A stretch of DNA of 63,865 nucleotides, counting the filler, from Perkinsus chesapeaki ATCC PRA-425 (Eukaryota; Protista; Perkinsozoa): assembly GCA_013115145.1 (NCBI GenBank). It is 9 parts of 9 records of this genome, joined end to end, with 100 filler letters (N's around TTAATTAATTAA, not from the genome) between each part and the next. Parts side by side here need not be neighbours in the genome. Positions count along the whole stretch, not along the records: positions 45,977 to 53,507 come from JAAPAO010001022.1; 8 more parts are not named here. One strand, given 5' to 3'. Below are positions 45,977 through 53,607 of the stretch, one piece after another. The notes under the pieces were generated by a model, which worked only from the letters and a program-made list of their open reading frames with translations, was not told the DNA's origin and made no database searches. Each line of letters opens with the position of its first letter. Position 1 is the stretch's first letter. A program made the position numbers and the translations under genes.

Positions 45977-46047
45977 TCCACGGCCGAGAATTGAACTCGG
46001 GTCTCCTGCGTGACAGGCAGGAATACTAACCTCTATACTACCGCGGA
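45977..46047 (-). tRNA. tRNA-Asp(GTC)
   Basis: TCCGCGG-TAGTATAGAGGTTAGTATT-CCTGC-CTGTCAC-GCAGG-AGAC-CCGAG-TTCAATT-CTCGG-CCGTGGA; full cloverleaf, ends at the contig edge. Confidence 0.92.
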
Positions 46048-46066
46048 ACTGACCAGATTATGCCTT

Positions 46067-47873
46067 CTATGTAGGAAGTCTTCCGGAAGTCCACGTTGTC
46101 GCAGGTGTCGCTTGCACATCATCGGCAACAAGCTCTGATTCCTCGTCTGGGGGGGGTGATCTTGGAGGTAGTCCTTGCAACGGACGTAGAGAAACCATAG
46201 CAGCATAGAACAAACAGTTCCCGTCACCTTTGACGTTTGCTATATTGAACTTGCTCTCCGGGTCTGGCCAAGTGTAGGCAACAGACTCGTCGGTTCTCAC
46301 CCAGTAGGAAGGGATGTAGTCAGTAGTACTCGCGGGCATATTACTGTAGTATACGTATGGGACTCCCATAATGGGAGGTTGTAATATTTTGCCGCTAAGT
46401 CCTAGTGGTACATCCTTGAATACCCGACTTTTGTCCGCGGTTCCTGTGTACAACACTACATGGGTGACCAATTCTCACCGAATCTAGACAAGATGTCTTT
46501 CATCGCTGAAGCGTAGGTGTTGAAGGTTCCAGGGGCTTCCGCGCCTGCGGGGAGGTACCCTTTCTTCACAGAGTAAGATAGCATTCCCGTCTTGTCCTTG
46601 ATACGGTTGAATGGACGCTTCCAAGCAACCTCTCTGTACAAGCGTCGTACTATCTCATCTCTGAAGAGCACTCCACCGTAACTGGTGTCCTCGCCAGACG
46701 CCTCTGAAGCGGTCGCCTGGCTTTCAGGAGTGTTCACGCTATTTGCCGACCCAGCTACCCAGCTCATGCCCCAAATCCCCTGACTCTAGATGTCGCTTGT
46801 AGAGTCTGGAGAAGTGCAAGTATGCGTCTCGACCCTTGTCGAACAACTGCTGCGCTATGGAATTTGTCTCGCCGAACAAATTTATCAGGTAAGCAGAATA
46901 GTGCTGGAGGTTTTCTGGCAGCGGGGAGTTGTTGTCACCCACCGCCAGATTAAGCTTTTCTGCTACCGTCAAAAAATAATCGACGAGACTAAGGTAATCC
47001 TTGTAGTCTACAGTAGTGTGCGACACATCTGGGTAGGAGTCGAGACTAATCTTGTTACGGTCGAGGACCCATTGTAGGGCTTGGGTGACCGAAGGGGAAG
47101 AGCGTTGAACGACGTGGAAACGCAACTCTATCCGATAGCCACCAACGTCCTGAGGGTGCAGGCGCGTAAGACGGGCATAGAGGCCACGTAGGTTGTCAAG
47201 CAAAGAGCGAAACGTTGCACGCGAGGTCGCTATACTGAATTGCGCCCGGCCTAAGGCCTTAATTGCGCGACGTAACCTTAAGTAAAAGGTATGCTCAATG
47301 CCGACTACTGGCCAATCGGCATTGTGATCCGTGTACGTTGTTACGAACTGTACCGTACCAGTTTCCAACCCACCTAACTTATCTAATACACGAAATTGTT
47401 TTTTGCTACGCGCAGCGTGACGGAACAACCAAATTTGACCGGCAGGCACTGTCAAGCCTAGGTCATAGATGGTGCCGCCATTGCGAAGAGTATCGCTGTG
47501 CGCGTAAGCAGAATGACGAGTTGCTATGCTGGGACGAAGCTTCAGCTTCATCCCATACATAGCTATATACAAGATATACATATATAGGCAGAGAAAAGTA
47601 ACCGCAGGCGTGGAGTGCATTGTAGAGGACTCTGGTTTCGCAATTGAATATACCAGAGATAACCGAGTTCTCGTTCGGATTAGGAAAGATCATGAGACCA
47701 GTGAATCTTAGATAATCGCAGAACGCAGTCTTCGGAAATGTATCCTCTACATACAAACCACACGGGGCGGAAGCCAAGCCGATGAGGGTCGCCGGTAGGT
47801 CTCGGAACCGGAACCGGTATTCGGTAGTCAAGGTCATATCTAGAGTAGGCGTCATTATCAGTTGAGGATTCAA
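46067..47873 (-). pseudogene. Frameshifted ORF, arm A: unknown GGYRIE domain + N-terminal half of an OTU-like cysteine protease
   Basis: ORFs 46739-47620, 46456-46767 and 46067-46471 are collinear homologues of 51317-52712; KGDGNCLFYA is an OTU Cys motif; TGGTCACC junction near 46470 is a 1-nt frameshift relative to arm B. Confidence 0.75.
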
Positions 47874-47893
47874 TCAACCCATATCAACCTTTA

Positions 47894-48200
47894 CCCCACC
47901 TACTCTGAATAATTAAATTTTCTATACCCTAGTACTCCCCACCTACTCTAAATTATTAAATTTCTATACCCTACTACCCAATACCCACTCTGAATAATTA
48001 AATTTCTATACCCTACTACCCCCCCACCTACCCTAAATAATTAGATTTCTAAACCATACTACCCCCCAACTACTCTAAATAATTAAATCTCTAAACCCTA
48101 CTAGTACCCATTTACTCTAAATAATCAAATTTCTGTACTCTATTACCCCGCAACTACTCAGAATAATTGGATTTTATACCCTACTACCCTCCCCCAACTA
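47894..48200. repeat. Degenerate ~41-bp tandem repeat, about 7 copies
   Basis: Consensus near CCCCACCTACTCTAAATAATTAAATTTCTATACCCTACTA. Confidence 0.85.
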
Positions 48201-48699
48201 ATGCTAAGAAATACCCTTGTGGGTACTACTACCCCCCTACAAATTGAATAAATGAATTGAAACCCAAATGAATTGAACAAATTTCATCTACACTACAATT
48301 GTGTTAGTCCCCGGGTCCCAACCAATCCAACCAATATAGTAATACATTGCATTAACAATGCTTTTAAGTGCGTGTTGTGACGTGTCTGGCTTTGTTTTCA
48401 CGTGTTCCACTTTGCCACACACTTCGCACGTATACCTTAGTTGATTGTACGGGATGTTATCCATTTAAAAGTAATAAAGTAATAAGTCAAGAATATGAAA
48501 TACCTGGGTAACTGTAAAGGTCTCCCTTTGTACTAGGTCGTATCGGACCTCCTCGCAGACTCTGTAAGCAAATACCTGGTTTGACATGAGTGAAAGATGA
48601 AATAACTTGTGTATGCGTGTCTATTTCATTTTTCGCGGTCGCCTTTCAATCTACAATAATATGCACTCAAAATAATATAAAACGATAACGATAATTTTT

Positions 48700-48948
48700 T
48701 TACTTTAGATTGGGATCATTTAATATATCCAACCATTTTCCTTTTCCGTGCCGTTTTACTCCAGTCACCAGGGAATTGATTTCGTAGATCACCCATTCAC
48801 ACTGATCTTGGGAGTTGTAGACATCGATATATTCTGTTGATGGCTCCTTGGGGGATGGTGGAGTAGGTTTACTACCGCCAATAGTAGCTGCACGTGGTCT
48901 GTTTTCAGACCAAAAATAATGCGCGGGTGAACTCAGATCACAGATCAC
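48700..48948 (-). CDS. Telobox-like single Myb domain fragment (helices 1-2)
   Basis: EWVIYEINSLVTGVKRHGKGKWLDILNDP resembles the TRB/TRF-type pattern W-x2-EE-x2-L-x2-GV-x-KHG-x-GKW-x2-IL-x-DP; third helix not found in frame. Confidence 0.6.
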   Translation of the reverse strand: MICDLSSPAHYFWSENRPRAATIGGSKPTPPSPKEPSTEYIDVYNSQDQCEWVIYEINSLVTGVKRHGKGKWLDILNDPNLK

Positions 48949-49219
48949 TGATCTGTAGGACAGTTAAACTACAGTATATTATTACATTAATTTTCCTTAC
49001 TTATTGGTATTGAAATATTATTGGTGTTCATTTTACGGGGTGATGGTAAATCAGTTAGACTGAAAGTTAGCAATGAAGAATAGGACAATATAGATACTTA
49101 CCCTCCAACCCCCTCATCCCCCGCAACCACAACGACCCTAGCATGCCTCGCTCCTTTAAAACTTATGCCCGTTAACTGGCGAGAAGAGAAGATCATGCCG
49201 AGTGTTGGAAACAGCGTGA

Positions 49220-49327
49220 TCGATCAAAACTTCACGCACGGCCGACAAATTACGCCAAAAATGGCGACGTATGAAGGCTAATAAAGAATTGCCAACTACA
49301 CTAGCGAGAGAGAAATCTCCCAACTAA
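49220..49327 (+). pseudogene. Myb/SANT third-helix-like remnant
   Basis: SIKTSRTADKLRQKWRRMK resembles RT-x2-LKDKWRN; preceded by an in-frame stop. Confidence 0.35.
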
Positions 49328-51269
49328 CCAGACTCTTCTGCAATAAGAATTTAATTACTAGTATCACTTAAATTTGTTATTAAGAACTATTGTTTTGCGT
49401 TAACTTCCGACTAACTATTACTGTCAACAGGTTATTATTCTTGAATAATGTCACAAGTCTACGACATGCTAGTAAAAAAAATCAATGTTAATGGGCGAAT
49501 AAGATTGTTCCCCATATGCATCGCTTGCCAGGAAGAGGAATCCTCTTAGAGAATAAGGATGTGCTTGGTAAACGATAGTACAAACATTGAACACGTTACC
49601 TCAAATTACATTATAGGTAACGATATTACACCTGAATATCAGCAACGTATGAATCTTCGTAAACCATCAATGGTAATTGCACAAGTATGTACCGATGAAG
49701 AAAACAGTGATGATGATGTTGATGTAGAATCCATACCGGTAGATGTCACTGGAAAAGGTAATCAATTTAGATATTACTAGTGATAATTCCACACCACACA
49801 GATACGACACATAACGATGACAATCGTCATCTTCATGACATGGTTGGTAATGACAATGATAAATCATCAGAGAAATACGAAGTGGTCTATCGTATAAGAG
49901 AGAGCAGGCATTATTCTATGAAAGTGTTAAAGGTGAACATCAACGAACTACGTACATTTCTGATAGATGGAGTTGATGACGATAGACTACGGCTCTGGCG
50001 ATACCCCCTATGGGACAAAGATGGAGAGACCATCGTAAGAAGATGCCCCATGAAGAATCTACTTGAACAATTTGATGAACCTGAGATTGTCACTACAGGA
50101 GCAGTCCCGAAAAGTATCAAGTTATTAACGATTACAGACTATGTAAACATTAAATACGAAGAGTATAAAAATCTCACTAAGCATCAAAGTATTGATATAT
50201 TGGTCAGCTGTAGGGGTCGCACAAATGAAGCGGCAAAGGTAATGGACCATATAACTGAACTACCTTACAATAAAGATTGTTGTATTCTACAGTAGAATTT
50301 CTACTGCTCGTAGCTATGGATGGTTTAATAAATGATTACGCATATGTCATGTATGACCAATATCTTCGAGAGTTCGGGAAAATAGCAGAGGAGCAACGCA
50401 TCCCCATAATGCTCGTCTTTTACTTATGGCTACGTTTGCAAAAATCGACAAGACGAGTTAGTCAGTACATTCGAAACTTACACAAGTAACTTTCGAATCG
50501 ATCATCAAACTTTAAACAATTTAATTTACCTTTTGCGTAGTGTGTTAAGTTTTAATTCATGTTCTTATAAACTTAGAAAAAGTGTTATACATTATAGTGG
50601 GTGAATTACTATTATGTCACCGTCCTCTGAAGATCCGGATGAATTTCTGGAACGCACGAATCCTAAGATGCAGAAGACATATAAGAGCGGAGCTGCATCA
50701 AATGTCATGACACCTGATAGATATCAGAAATGTGTTCGATCAAAAAAAGATTCTACTACTGGCTAAATCGTACTTTCAATAAAATGGTAAGTAATACCTG
50801 AGTACTATGATTATTAATATTATTCTCTCAGAATACCGCTGTCCTTATTATTCAACACTTAATCTCATGGATGGTATGGAGAGTTCAGGGACCTACGTAA
50901 TAAAGGCTATGCATCGTATATTTTAAATTCCTATCAAGGTTTGATGAAACCGACAAGTATCGGCAAGTTAAGTGCCGCATCAATGAAGAGCAACGAATTA
51001 CCAAGCCTTTCAATCAACCTCATCTTCACTTCCCACAGTTCTGCATATGGCGTTAATAATCGTAACACTAAGGGTTTAATCTATATCATTGCGCATGTAT
51101 AATGTACAGACAGTAACTACATGGGTTCCGGCTAATTGAAGCAGAGCAATGGATTCCCATCCTACTTGTGTTTTACTTGTGACTACATTTACATTAATGA
51201 GAGACGTATTGAACACTATATTCGTAACATATAGAAATAAGTAACAACGCTATAGTAGTAACGAGAGCG

Positions 51270-52882
51270 AAACTATTTACGATATCGGTAAAATCTTCAA
51301 AACTGATGACATTTGGTTGCTTCGTCGCACTGTCCAGAGTAAGAAGCAGTACAGAGTCCTGGACAAGCTGGGCGGGCTTGACTTTGGAACTGTACAATTT
51401 ACTACTTCTTACTCGAAATCGTGCGATAAGTGGCCTGTCATAGATGTAGAACATACTTTCTATTTTCGTTTACGCCACGTAATCAGGGCATTGACTAGCA
51501 TGGACTTCAGTGTGTCTCAAACGCGCCACAAGTTCCGTCAACTGCTAGCCAACTACCGAAATCTACATACCAAGCTTTCAAGGGTGGATAAAAAGGATGT
51601 TGGCGGATACCGGATTGAATGCCGTTTCCACGTGAAAAACGTATCAACTCCTTCCATCCAAGAAGCTGTAGACTGGTTACTGGCACGTGGTAAGTATAAC
51701 CTCGATTCCTATCCAGACCTTCGAACAGTTAAATTTGCGGACTATCTGAGTTTAACCGACAAGGCACTCAAAGCCGCAGAGAAACTTGAACTGGCCAGTT
51801 GGGACAACAGAAATACCTTCCCTAAGGACCTCACATATTTCTCTGCTTATTTGATTAACTTGTTCGGGGAGGCCAATAGTTACACACAACAAAGGTCGCG
51901 AGGCTTATCACTTTTATTTGCGTATTTATAACGAGGACGTTACACTACACGAAACCCGCCCTTCCACACCTCCCCCAGTGGGAGAGGTACAACCGGAAGA
52001 CCGCGAAGTCTACACACCCGAAAGGGCGAACACTGGACCAGCGGCAGTGAGTAGCGACGTCAATATACTAGACGACAATTTGGCGCTAACCCTCTACAGA
52101 GTCGTGAAGTGGCGCCGACCCTTTTCTGGAGCTCAAAATAAGCAAGGACTAATTGCTTACAGCCTAAAAAAGGCGGCTCAAAAGAAAGGGAACAAGTCGG
52201 TGTCACAAGCTTTCAAGTCCTACGCCGATGCTATGCAATATATTATCTCCCAGTTCGGTGCAGGCTGGAGAGCGCACGTTGTTCTGTATGGAGGAAACGC
52301 GTCAAAACGTCGTGTATTTAGGGATGTTGATTGGGGATTTGATGGCAATGTGTTGCAACCCGCTCATGAGTGGCGCAACATGCCCGCTCGAGCAACCGAC
52401 ACATTCCCGACGTACTGGTGGAGAACAGAAGGACCAGGACAAGGACACTATACGTGGGTCCTGCGTAATAAAGAGTTCTACCGCATCATCGTTCCTGGCG
52501 ATGGGTCTTGCCTCTTTTACGCAAACTCTGTCTCAGCCAATGCTCTTCCTGGGAGGTTGCCAAGCTGTATACGCGACAAGAACGTTGAGGATTTCCCGTT
52601 AATTCTCCGCCACGAAGTCTGCAACATTCTGCAGAACAACCCTCCTCTACAGGACAGTTGGGAAGCAGAGTGTCCAAGGCTTGGGCGGGAGAAAGAGAGT
52701 TGTCGGTCATAGCGACCATTTTCAATCGACGGGTGGTAGTACTTCAGCGTACCAACGGAACGTCTCGCGACCTTCACGAGGTACAAGCCTGGGGCAACGC
52801 CACTCGAGAAGTTGATCCACTCTGCACCTACTATGATGGCACCTGCCATTATAGTGGCCTCATCGAGAAGCGTAAGCAGTAG
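51270..52882 (+). pseudogene. Frameshifted ORF, arm B: unknown GGYRIE domain + complete OTU-like protease
   Basis: ORFs 51317-51931, 51918-52712 and 52658-52882; PGDGSCLFYA (Cys), WAGEREL..IA..F.RRVVV, YYDGTCHY (His); frameshifts near 51890 and 52660. Confidence 0.78.
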
Positions 52883-53178
52883 GTTTACTTCCTCGGTTGT
52901 GTAGGTGCGGTTGAACCTGTGTAGGGTTCCTTTGTTACGTTTCTTTCCTTTGTTTCCTATTCTTTGCATGTTCTACTCTGGCCACCTATATCGCTTTATA
53001 TTATTCTGTGCATTACTAATATCTTGCTGTCTTGCAATATGAATAACATTTGAGTTCAGCAGTCAATTAATGGGGGAGGGGTAGTTACAGAAAACTAGAG
53101 GGGAACAAAACGAAACAATCTGAGTACAGAAACCACGCCTCACTTTTACAACACTAGGGAAACAATAAACATTATAGT

Positions 53179-53252
53179 GACATTTTAGCTTAGCTGGTTA
53201 AGCACGCGTGCTGTGACGCAGAAGGTCCCGGGTTCGAATCCCAAGGGTGACT
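53179..53252 (+). tRNA. Degenerate tRNA (isotype uncertain; Val-like 3' half, apparent GTG at the anticodon position), probably a pseudogene
   Basis: D arm GCTT/AAGC, GGTTCGAATCCC, then T5; anticodon, T and acceptor stems are imperfect. Confidence 0.55.
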
Positions 53253-53607
53253 TTTTAAACACTTTTCTACTTGTCGTTCTCCTAGGTGCTACCCACCCTA
53301 CCCAGTATACTTCATAACCATATATCTCAGTAACCACGCATTTTCAATACATCAAACTCCGCCCACGTATGCTACTGAACCTCCTCTATAACATAGCCGA
53401 AAAGAAACGAGATTCAAATACGCAGCAATGCATGTATACCATCAGACCTGTCCCCACTCACCAAATTCACAGCAGGGTCTTTCTTCCGACCAGCTCCTGC
53501 CATCTGTNNNNNNNNNNNNNNNNNNNNNNNNNNNNNNNNNNNNNNNNNNNNTTAATTAATTAANNNNNNNNNNNNNNNNNNNNNNNNNNNNNNNNNNNNN
53601 NNNNNNN

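Follow-up and report, generated by a model that had tools for sequence, protein, structure and literature searches.

An old head-to-head pair of OTU-protease-type coding regions in Perkinsus chesapeaki, probably decaying members of a lineage-restricted family

Two outward-facing arms on one short contig

Perkinsus chesapeaki is a perkinsozoan parasite of clams. The window analyzed here is a stretch of 63,865 nucleotides (nt), filler included, in which nine parts of the draft genome of strain ATCC PRA-425 (GCA_013115145.1) are joined end to end, and all positions count along this window. The locus in question, positions 45977-53507, is one whole short contig of 7,531 bases (JAAPAO010001022.1) carrying two diverged coding regions that both face outward, each leading through a domain known only from Perkinsus to the sequence of a putative OTU protease. 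Arm A is on the minus strand and runs from 47873 to 46067, while arm B is on the plus strand and runs from 51272 to 52882. The GC content is ~0.50 in the arms (0.49-0.50) as compared to 0.37 in the centre of the contig. In a word search, the longest open reading frame (ORF) of arm A was 100% identical to P0001, the hypothetical protein FOL47_000253, partial, of Perkinsus chesapeaki. The pieces flanking frame breaks were searched separately in every search. The features are summarized in Table 1.

A first-pass annotation of the locus had described two diverged, frameshifted and homologous arms pointing away from each other, and this description was borne out. In BLASTP the core ORFs of arm A and arm B shared 106/194 identities (55%, E 4e-76), the reading frame changes in both arms, and tblastx showed the arms to be colinear over ~430 amino acids (aa), with 47473-46193 on the minus strand aligned to 51272-52532 on the plus strand. 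At the DNA level, blastn detected likeness in two stretches of ~40 nt only. Since the arms are colinear in tblastx while blastn gives only these two stretches, the duplication is old and has been kept at the protein level. In addition, the PTPxSP, Myb, core and Cys-box landmarks are found in equal order on both sides of a centre at ~48986. The core motif YD[IL]G lies 1525 nt away from this centre in arm A but 2297 nt away in arm B, whose extra length roughly equals a direct duplication located upstream in this arm, in which 50340-50495 recurs at 51093-51246 with an offset of ~753 bp (tblastx of 50340-50438 against 51093-51191: 58% identity, E 3e-8). Given the mirror symmetry of the PTPxSP and Myb segments and a difference in distance that the direct duplication explains, the inverted duplication probably spanned the complete unit, with the Myb-like segment at one end and the OTU domain at the other.

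Neither arm is contained in a single reading frame. Three-frame reading of arm A placed its breaks near 47590-47570 in TA-rich sequence, at 46767-46745 and at 46470-46462, the first of these parting the N domain from the core. Arm B is broken near 51893, where it is without three residues conserved in all relatives, and near 52673, where it is without ~88 nt carried by P0004, a sister copy that is 97-100% identical and located on a 10.8-kb contig. A hidden Markov model (HMM) built from external members only found no N domain in arm B, the best stretch having an E value of 0.35. Two orphan ORFs at 49780-50495, upstream of arm B, may be what decay has left of the N-terminal part of this unit. 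For the 171-aa ORF, which lies in the AT-rich centre (49780-50295), identity with a Crinkler N-terminal region (ubiquitin-like header) was considered and rejected; it was indicated by an Atlas score of 0.84 only, with no Pfam match and no literature link to Perkinsus.

The Cys box of OTU proteases (consensus GDGxCLFYA) is found in both arms, as GDGNCLFYA in arm A (46202-46228, minus strand) and as GDGSCLFYA in arm B (52497-52523, plus strand), whereas the His box, CHYSGL, is found in arm B only (52844-52861), where it can be reached only across the frame break near 52673. The earlier description of an OTU motif at the end of each arm thus holds for the Cys box in both arms and for the His box in one. 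It had also been proposed that the OTU domain of arm A is cut mid-domain, and the ORF indeed stops ~45 aa past the Cys box. Arm A has no His box because this ORF ends 19 nt before a tRNA gene, and tblastn with P0004 recovered no more OTU sequence in arm A before the contig end. Matches to the Pfam OTU family (PF02338) reached 23.0 bits against a cut-off of 23.3 in the C-terminal piece of arm B and 18.4 bits in P0004, the gathering threshold not being reached with the pieces scored apart. The best PDB sequence match of the C-terminal piece of arm B was OTUD5 (E 0.19), aligned through the His box, and the Cys-box pieces gave a weak match to Otubain in arm A and a weak match to EschOTU in arm B. 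The OTU domain is thus predicted from concordant weak matches plus Cys and His boxes in the right order, with no single strong match among them.

Table 1. Features of the contig at positions 45977-53507, in order along the window.
Feature	Position	Strand	Evidence
tRNA-Asp (anticodon GTC)	45977-46047	-	Rfam RF00005, 54.4 bits (gathering 29), E 7e-10, model positions 1-70 of 71
Arm A last piece: end of mid domain and OTU Cys box	46067-46471	-	Translation; external-family HMM E 4.4e-6
Arm A mid domain (WKRPF...YSVKKG...AMKDILSRF), frame differs from neighbours	46456-46767	-	HMM E 2.8e-34; 71% identity with P0003 of P. marinus
Arm A orphan core domain (YDLG...GGYRIE...AYLINLFGE)	46739-47620	-	55% identity to arm B; external-family HMM E 5e-101
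Arm A N domain (RFRDLP...ASAP...FCDYLR)	47598-47816	-	tblastn with P0002 residues 36-108, 51% identity; HMM E 2.6e-20
42-bp minisatellite, 7 copies (79% matches)	47894-48189		TRF score 350-365; repeat search
Short ORF with CEVCGK...H, possible counterpart of P0005/P0010 zinc finger	48291-48464	-	Weak; motif by eye; Pfam zf-CCHC_4 E 0.034
PTPPSP segment, then Myb/SANT-like helices 1-2 (W..YE...L..GVKRHGKGKW..IL)	48703-48963	-	HTH_CHD1_Hrp3, 25.6 bits against 27, E 1.2e-5
PTPSSP segment, then broken Myb-like remnant	49084-49324	+	Myb_DNA-bind_5 E 0.013 on 49220-49324
Orphan ORFs (171 aa and 70 aa) upstream of arm B	49780-50495	+	No Pfam match; 3' part repeated directly at 51093-51246
Arm B orphan core domain	51272-51892	+	77% identical to P0002; HMM E 7.5e-90
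Arm B linker, mid domain and OTU Cys box	51888-52712	+	HMM E 1.7e-46
Arm B OTU C-terminal half with His box	52658-52882	+	Pfam OTU PF02338, 23.0 bits against 23.3, E 1.2e-4
tRNA-like relic	53187-53256	+	D-arm/A-box-like GCTTAGCTGGTTAAGC, T-loop/B-box GGGTTCGAATCCC, T5 run; no cloverleaf

Between the arms, the PTPxSP segments are mirror-symmetric (48850-48867 on the minus strand and 49105-49122 on the plus strand), with one ahead of each Myb-like remnant. Outward-facing Myb remnants preceded by such segments had been noted before; the symmetric segments and the Myb-like matches were recovered, and the Myb scores remained sub-threshold. Weak as they are, these remnants are considered real Myb-like sequences. 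In the minus-strand remnant a stop codon precedes the third helix, while the plus-strand remnant keeps only helix 3 (SRTADKLRQKWRRMK), its first helices being scattered over other frames. The two remnants are thereby complementary, each holding the part that the other has lost.

A zinc finger upstream of arm A was suggestive by eye and was not retained, its match to the family HMM (E 7) not being significant. The minisatellite is placed between the coding region of arm A and this zinc-finger-like ORF, and in P0005 the corresponding place is taken by a coding PPGESIT repeat. The minisatellite shows a strong C-over-G strand bias, with a GC skew of ~-0.44. Within the coding sequence of arm A (47787-47817, minus strand), Rfam gave a sub-threshold match to the L31-Actinobacteria ribosomal leader (28.9 bits, gathering score 35, E 0.017), which in a eukaryotic coding sequence is almost certainly a chance match.

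Distribution, architecture and predicted fold of the family

A profile covering the N, core and mid domains was scored with HMMER against all 1.84 billion cluster representatives. True matches were obtained from Perkinsus only and comprised P0005 (857 aa), P0010 (511 aa) and P0002 from P. chesapeaki as well as P0009 from P. marinus; the other HMMER matches were multi-stretch matches to long repetitive animal proteins. P0003 from P. marinus was added by word search, and two read-assembly fragments, P0006 and P0014, also match the profile. No relatives were identified in the JGI metagenomes or in IMG/VR. Relatives are encoded by no fewer than six P. chesapeaki loci and two P. marinus loci, mostly as fragmentary gene models and several of them on short contigs, which agrees with the repeated gene family suggested in the first-pass annotation. 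An HMM of external members only recovered all pieces of arm A (E 2.6e-20, 5e-101, 2.8e-34 and 4e-6) and both pieces of arm B (E 7.5e-90 and 1.7e-46).

A-type copies occur in P. marinus with 70% identity (P0003 and P0009), and B-type copies occur elsewhere in P. chesapeaki (P0002 and P0004). In the phylogenetic tree, arm B groups with P0002 (support 96/97) and P0003 groups with P0006 (99/96), while P0005 and P0010 form a deep sister pair; arm A takes no settled position between the arm B/P0002 and P0003/P0006 groups. The longest relatives, P0005 and P0010, start with a CxxC...H...C zinc finger and not with a Myb domain, which weakens the earlier idea of a Myb-X-OTU product.

The annotated gene models of this family are unreliable. 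When compared to 52366-52879, the gene model of P0004 (FOL47_010800) was seen to start in the wrong frame, to skip the Cys box and to have part of the C-terminal half spliced out. The 10.8-kb contig encoding P0004 may be an allelic haplotig of the present locus.

No Pfam match was found in the N, core and mid domains of any member, and a PDB profile search of these domains also gave nothing. The whole-protein AlphaFold2 (AF2) model of P0002 was poor (pLDDT 46), and searches with this model were uninformative. The core alone was predicted by AF2 with a pLDDT of 80.5 and a pTM of 0.76, and consists in the model of four strands, helices, two more strands and a C-terminal helical bundle. An RNase H/DDE fold was considered for the core, as Foldseek placed RNase H2A at the top for both models, but this candidate was rejected on E values of 0.03-0.4, TM scores of 0.08-0.16 and root-mean-square deviations (rmsd) of 14-21 Å. 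An exhaustive VIA search of the core returned no RNase H-like chain in the top 50. The best Z score in this search was 6.5, and many SRPBCC/Bet v 1-type helix-grip proteins were matched over residues 1-160 with Z scores of 5-6.5, the noise guide being 7-8. Because the VIA scores are under the noise guide and the Foldseek TM scores are ~0.15, no fold was assigned to the core. The predicted models lend no support to a DDE/RNase H, Rep or polymerase fold. Two further leads from the Atlas, to Rep_trans and to an RNA-dependent RNA polymerase (RdRP), were unsupported by Pfam, PDB profile and fold search and were discarded.

tRNA sequences at the arm ends and search for a mobile element

An intact tRNA-Asp on the strand of arm A had been reported to follow this arm, and Rfam confirmed it. 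The gene lies 19 nt beyond the stop codon of arm A, and only its discriminator base is missing, cut off where the contig ends. ARAGORN missed the gene, probably owing to this position at the very edge. That the contig stops a single base before the tRNA-Asp is complete at its 3' end suggests that the assembly broke in a repeated tRNA context.

The sequence beside arm B is a tRNA relic and not a gene. A degenerate tRNA had been proposed here, and its A-box and B-box-like motifs and T5 run were recovered; however, no tRNA was called at ~53187-53252 (plus strand) by ARAGORN, by Rfam at E<=1 on the piece or by Rfam at E<=10 on 201 nt, and the sequence folded no better than its shuffles (z = 0.47). 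Its anticodon arm has degenerated, the T stem has two broken pairs, and the acceptor strands on the 5' and 3' sides do not pair. Its tRNA character is lost directly upstream of TTAGCTTAGCTGG (53187-53200), at the A-box position of the reported Dada insertion, for which the target-site duplication (TSD) is TAGCTC. No Dada-like sequence was recognized upstream of the relic. A split tRNA was also considered for the relic and was rejected, a matching 5' half being absent from the contig.

Some tRNA genes of P. marinus are present in hundreds of copies (Kojima and Jurka 2013, PMC3706591), and it is therefore not very surprising to meet one on a 7.5-kb contig rich in repeats. The targets of the Dada DNA transposons of P. 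marinus are the genes for tRNA-Ile, -Leu, -Gly and -Tyr, in which they insert at the A-box TAGCTC (PMC3706591). With Dada elements and high-copy tRNA genes both at hand, tRNA genes are therefore common neighbours of repeats in Perkinsus, and an element targeting tRNA genes would not be new in itself in this genus. The tRNA link of the OTU family is drawn from one locus. The tRNA-Asp and the relic are best read as tRNA-rich, repeat-rich surroundings typical of Perkinsus genomes, and not as a demonstrated property of the family.

The first-pass annotation had recognized no signature of a reverse transcriptase (RT), DDE transposase, tyrosine recombinase (YR) or HUH protein, and the same was found here. 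Pfam searches of every piece and of the relatives identified no transposase, RT, integrase or Rep domain, no YR signature was detected by Pfam, PDB profile or fold search, and the fold search of the core also gave none of these. Shared termini and TSDs had been proposed as a further check on mobility, and the repeat search found no terminal inverted repeats (TIRs), long terminal repeats (LTRs) or TSDs on the contig; the inverted repeats present were an inter-arm coding 40-mer and two short AT-rich pairs. The earlier suggestion of an undescribed tRNA-associated mobile element is not supported, as nothing speaks for it beyond one bona fide tRNA, located at a truncated arm end, and no enzyme of an element, no termini and no TSDs were found. 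The earlier observation is thus partly confirmed, the second tRNA being a relic and the Myb remnants being weak.

Interpretation and comparison with known systems

We consider it fairly probable that the locus represents an old, decaying inverted pair belonging to a lineage-restricted, multi-copy family of OTU proteases. The pair would have originated by an old head-to-head inverted duplication of one unit of a Perkinsus-restricted family. In this unit a PTPxSP/Myb-like remnant comes first, possibly followed by a zinc finger; a repeat tract and the N domain are next, then the orphan core and the mid domain, and the OTU domain forms the C-terminal end. Decay of arm A would have involved the three frame breaks and the loss of the His-box half of its OTU domain, and that of arm B the loss of a detectable N domain, the internal direct duplication (~750 bp) and two frame-breaking deletions. 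From domain order alone, intact members would most likely be DNA- or chromatin-tethered proteases of deubiquitinase type, in which the zinc finger or Myb domain may serve in targeting, the Cys/His pair of the OTU domain in catalysis, and the orphan domains in binding of substrates or partners.

Several observations weigh against a decaying protease family. Nearly all annotated members are fragmentary or on short contigs, and decayed pieces appear in raw-read assemblies (P0006 and P0014); such mostly fragmentary, repeated copies also fit a selfish repeated element. Ginger1 and Helentron transposases are known to carry OTU domains (PMC2836005). Two co-oriented tRNA-type sequences at both outer arm ends within 7.5 kb are somewhat above random expectation. 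Furthermore, the Myb-like remnants may belong to separate neighbouring genes, and some of the frame breaks could stem from assembly errors or short introns, which would make the term decaying too strong.

The arms could alternatively be copies of an undescribed mobile element that integrates beside or into tRNA genes and encodes the Myb/zinc-finger-orphan-OTU protein as its own product, the orphan core then being a novel recombinase or the element being mobilized in trans. We regard this as unlikely. The many, mostly broken copies in two species, several of them on short contigs, are consistent with such an element, as is the near-identical second copy of arm B, P0004, although, in a polyploid genome, P0004 may be no more than an allelic haplotig. 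The tRNA-Asp has the orientation of arm A and lies only 19 nt from it, and a tRNA-like relic follows arm B; however, the tRNA-Asp is intact and adjoins a truncated OTU domain rather than a natural element end, and the association is known from one locus. Similarly, the 5' acceptor of the relic is replaced right at the TAGCT A-box, which is the Dada insertion site with its TAGCTC TSD (PMC3706591), but the missing 5' half of the relic is not found on the contig. The order of zinc finger, large domain and C-terminal OTU domain parallels that of Ginger1 (PMC2836005), while the searches described above revealed neither a transposase, RT, integrase, Rep or YR signature (Pfam, PDB profile and fold search) nor TIRs, LTRs or TSDs, and the arms show no DNA similarity outside the coding sequence. 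A more specific form of this idea, a selfish element particular to Perkinsus that resides beside or within tRNA genes and combines a DNA-binding head of Myb or zinc-finger type, a core of new fold acting in integration or partner recruitment and a C-terminal OTU domain, with no recognizable DDE, RT, YR or HUH enzyme, seems to us quite unlikely.

It is also doubtful, and in our view distinctly improbable, that both arms are functional, divergently transcribed paralogous host genes, the breaks then reflecting short introns or else indel errors in the draft assembly of a polyploid genome. Such genes would account for the finding that the homologous segments contain frame changes only and no in-frame stops, and for the coding-like GC content of the arms (0.49-0.50 compared to 0.37 in the centre). 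The break near 46760 is in a variable linker where the depositor's model of P0001 has an intron, and two breaks fall within sequence of low complexity or short runs. If the 47580 break were an intron, however, residues conserved in all relatives would be removed with it. Losses of coding sequence further argue against intact genes, as arm A is without the entire His-box half of the OTU domain and arm B is without ~88 nt in this domain compared to its near-identical sister, as well as three conserved residues and the frame at ~51893. The P. marinus gene models of the relatives are likewise fragments. An endogenized viral gene, in which an OTU protease with replication-associated domains would derive from a Perkinsus virus, we hold to be very improbable. 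OTU proteases are common in viruses, and the Atlas matches of P0002 include RdRP (0.93) and viral 'replication protein' clusters (0.92), but these scores are within the chance range, with shared-feature counts <170. No relative was found in IMG/VR or anywhere outside Perkinsus, Pfam identified no viral hallmark domain, and the fold search gave no polymerase or Rep fold.

The locus adds a small genus-restricted family to the catalogue, in which a divergent OTU domain is fused to unassignable domains, the core of which folds confidently in the model. It also documents an inverted, probably decaying gene pair in a draft protist genome, for which the depositor's gene models of the family are fragments. 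A lineage-specific family of putative DNA-tethered deubiquitinases could be of interest for parasite biology. If the tRNA linkage should prove true genome-wide, this would be a second tRNA-linked element of Perkinsus, enzymatically unrecognizable and thus a new route of safe-haven targeting.

To our knowledge, the Dada elements of Perkinsus are the only known tRNA-targeting DNA transposons. The OTU family resembles them in occurring in the same genus and in that the arm B relic loses its tRNA character just upstream of TAGCT, Dada inserting at TAGCTC. In contrast, the transposase of Dada is of the DDE type and bears CCCC and CCHC zinc fingers, and Dada elements split tRNA genes, whereas the tRNA-Asp is intact here and Asp is outside the described Dada targets (Ile, Leu, Gly and Tyr). 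The Dada mode of insertion, in a small-RNA gene with a 6-bp TSD, was not seen at the uninterrupted tRNA-Asp. Membership in Dada was rejected by a weak, motif-only comparison, the family motifs being missing from the published transposase alignment apart from three unrelated chance strings. As the motifs are absent from the Dada alignment and the tRNA-Asp is uninterrupted, the OTU family is not Dada.

Ginger1 DNA transposases start with an N-terminal zinc finger, continue with a large central domain and end in an OTU protease (Bao, Kapitonov and Jurka 2010, PMC2836005). The OTU family shares this order of parts, and both are multi-copy. It differs from Ginger1 in that a Gypsy-type integrase was not detected, YPYY, H2C2, the DDE core and GPY/F all being missed, and in that the model of its own core displays no RNase H fold; no rve/integrase match was found in any piece or relative. 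Moreover, Ginger1 has TIRs of 40-270 bp, and none were found on the contig. Helentron and Helitron proteins likewise combine OTU and zinc fingers in a mobile-element protein of eukaryotes, unlike the OTU family, for which neither the contig nor the relatives yielded a Rep (HUH) or helicase domain. Likeness is also seen to the OTU proteases themselves (PF02338, e.g. human OTUD5), with which the family shares the D-G-x-C-L-F Cys box, the H-Y His box near the C-terminus and W-x-G-x-x-E-L between them. From these proteases it is set apart by its strong divergence, by the breaks in both copies at this locus and by the fusion of the OTU domain to ~600 aa of orphan domains that are found only in Perkinsus.

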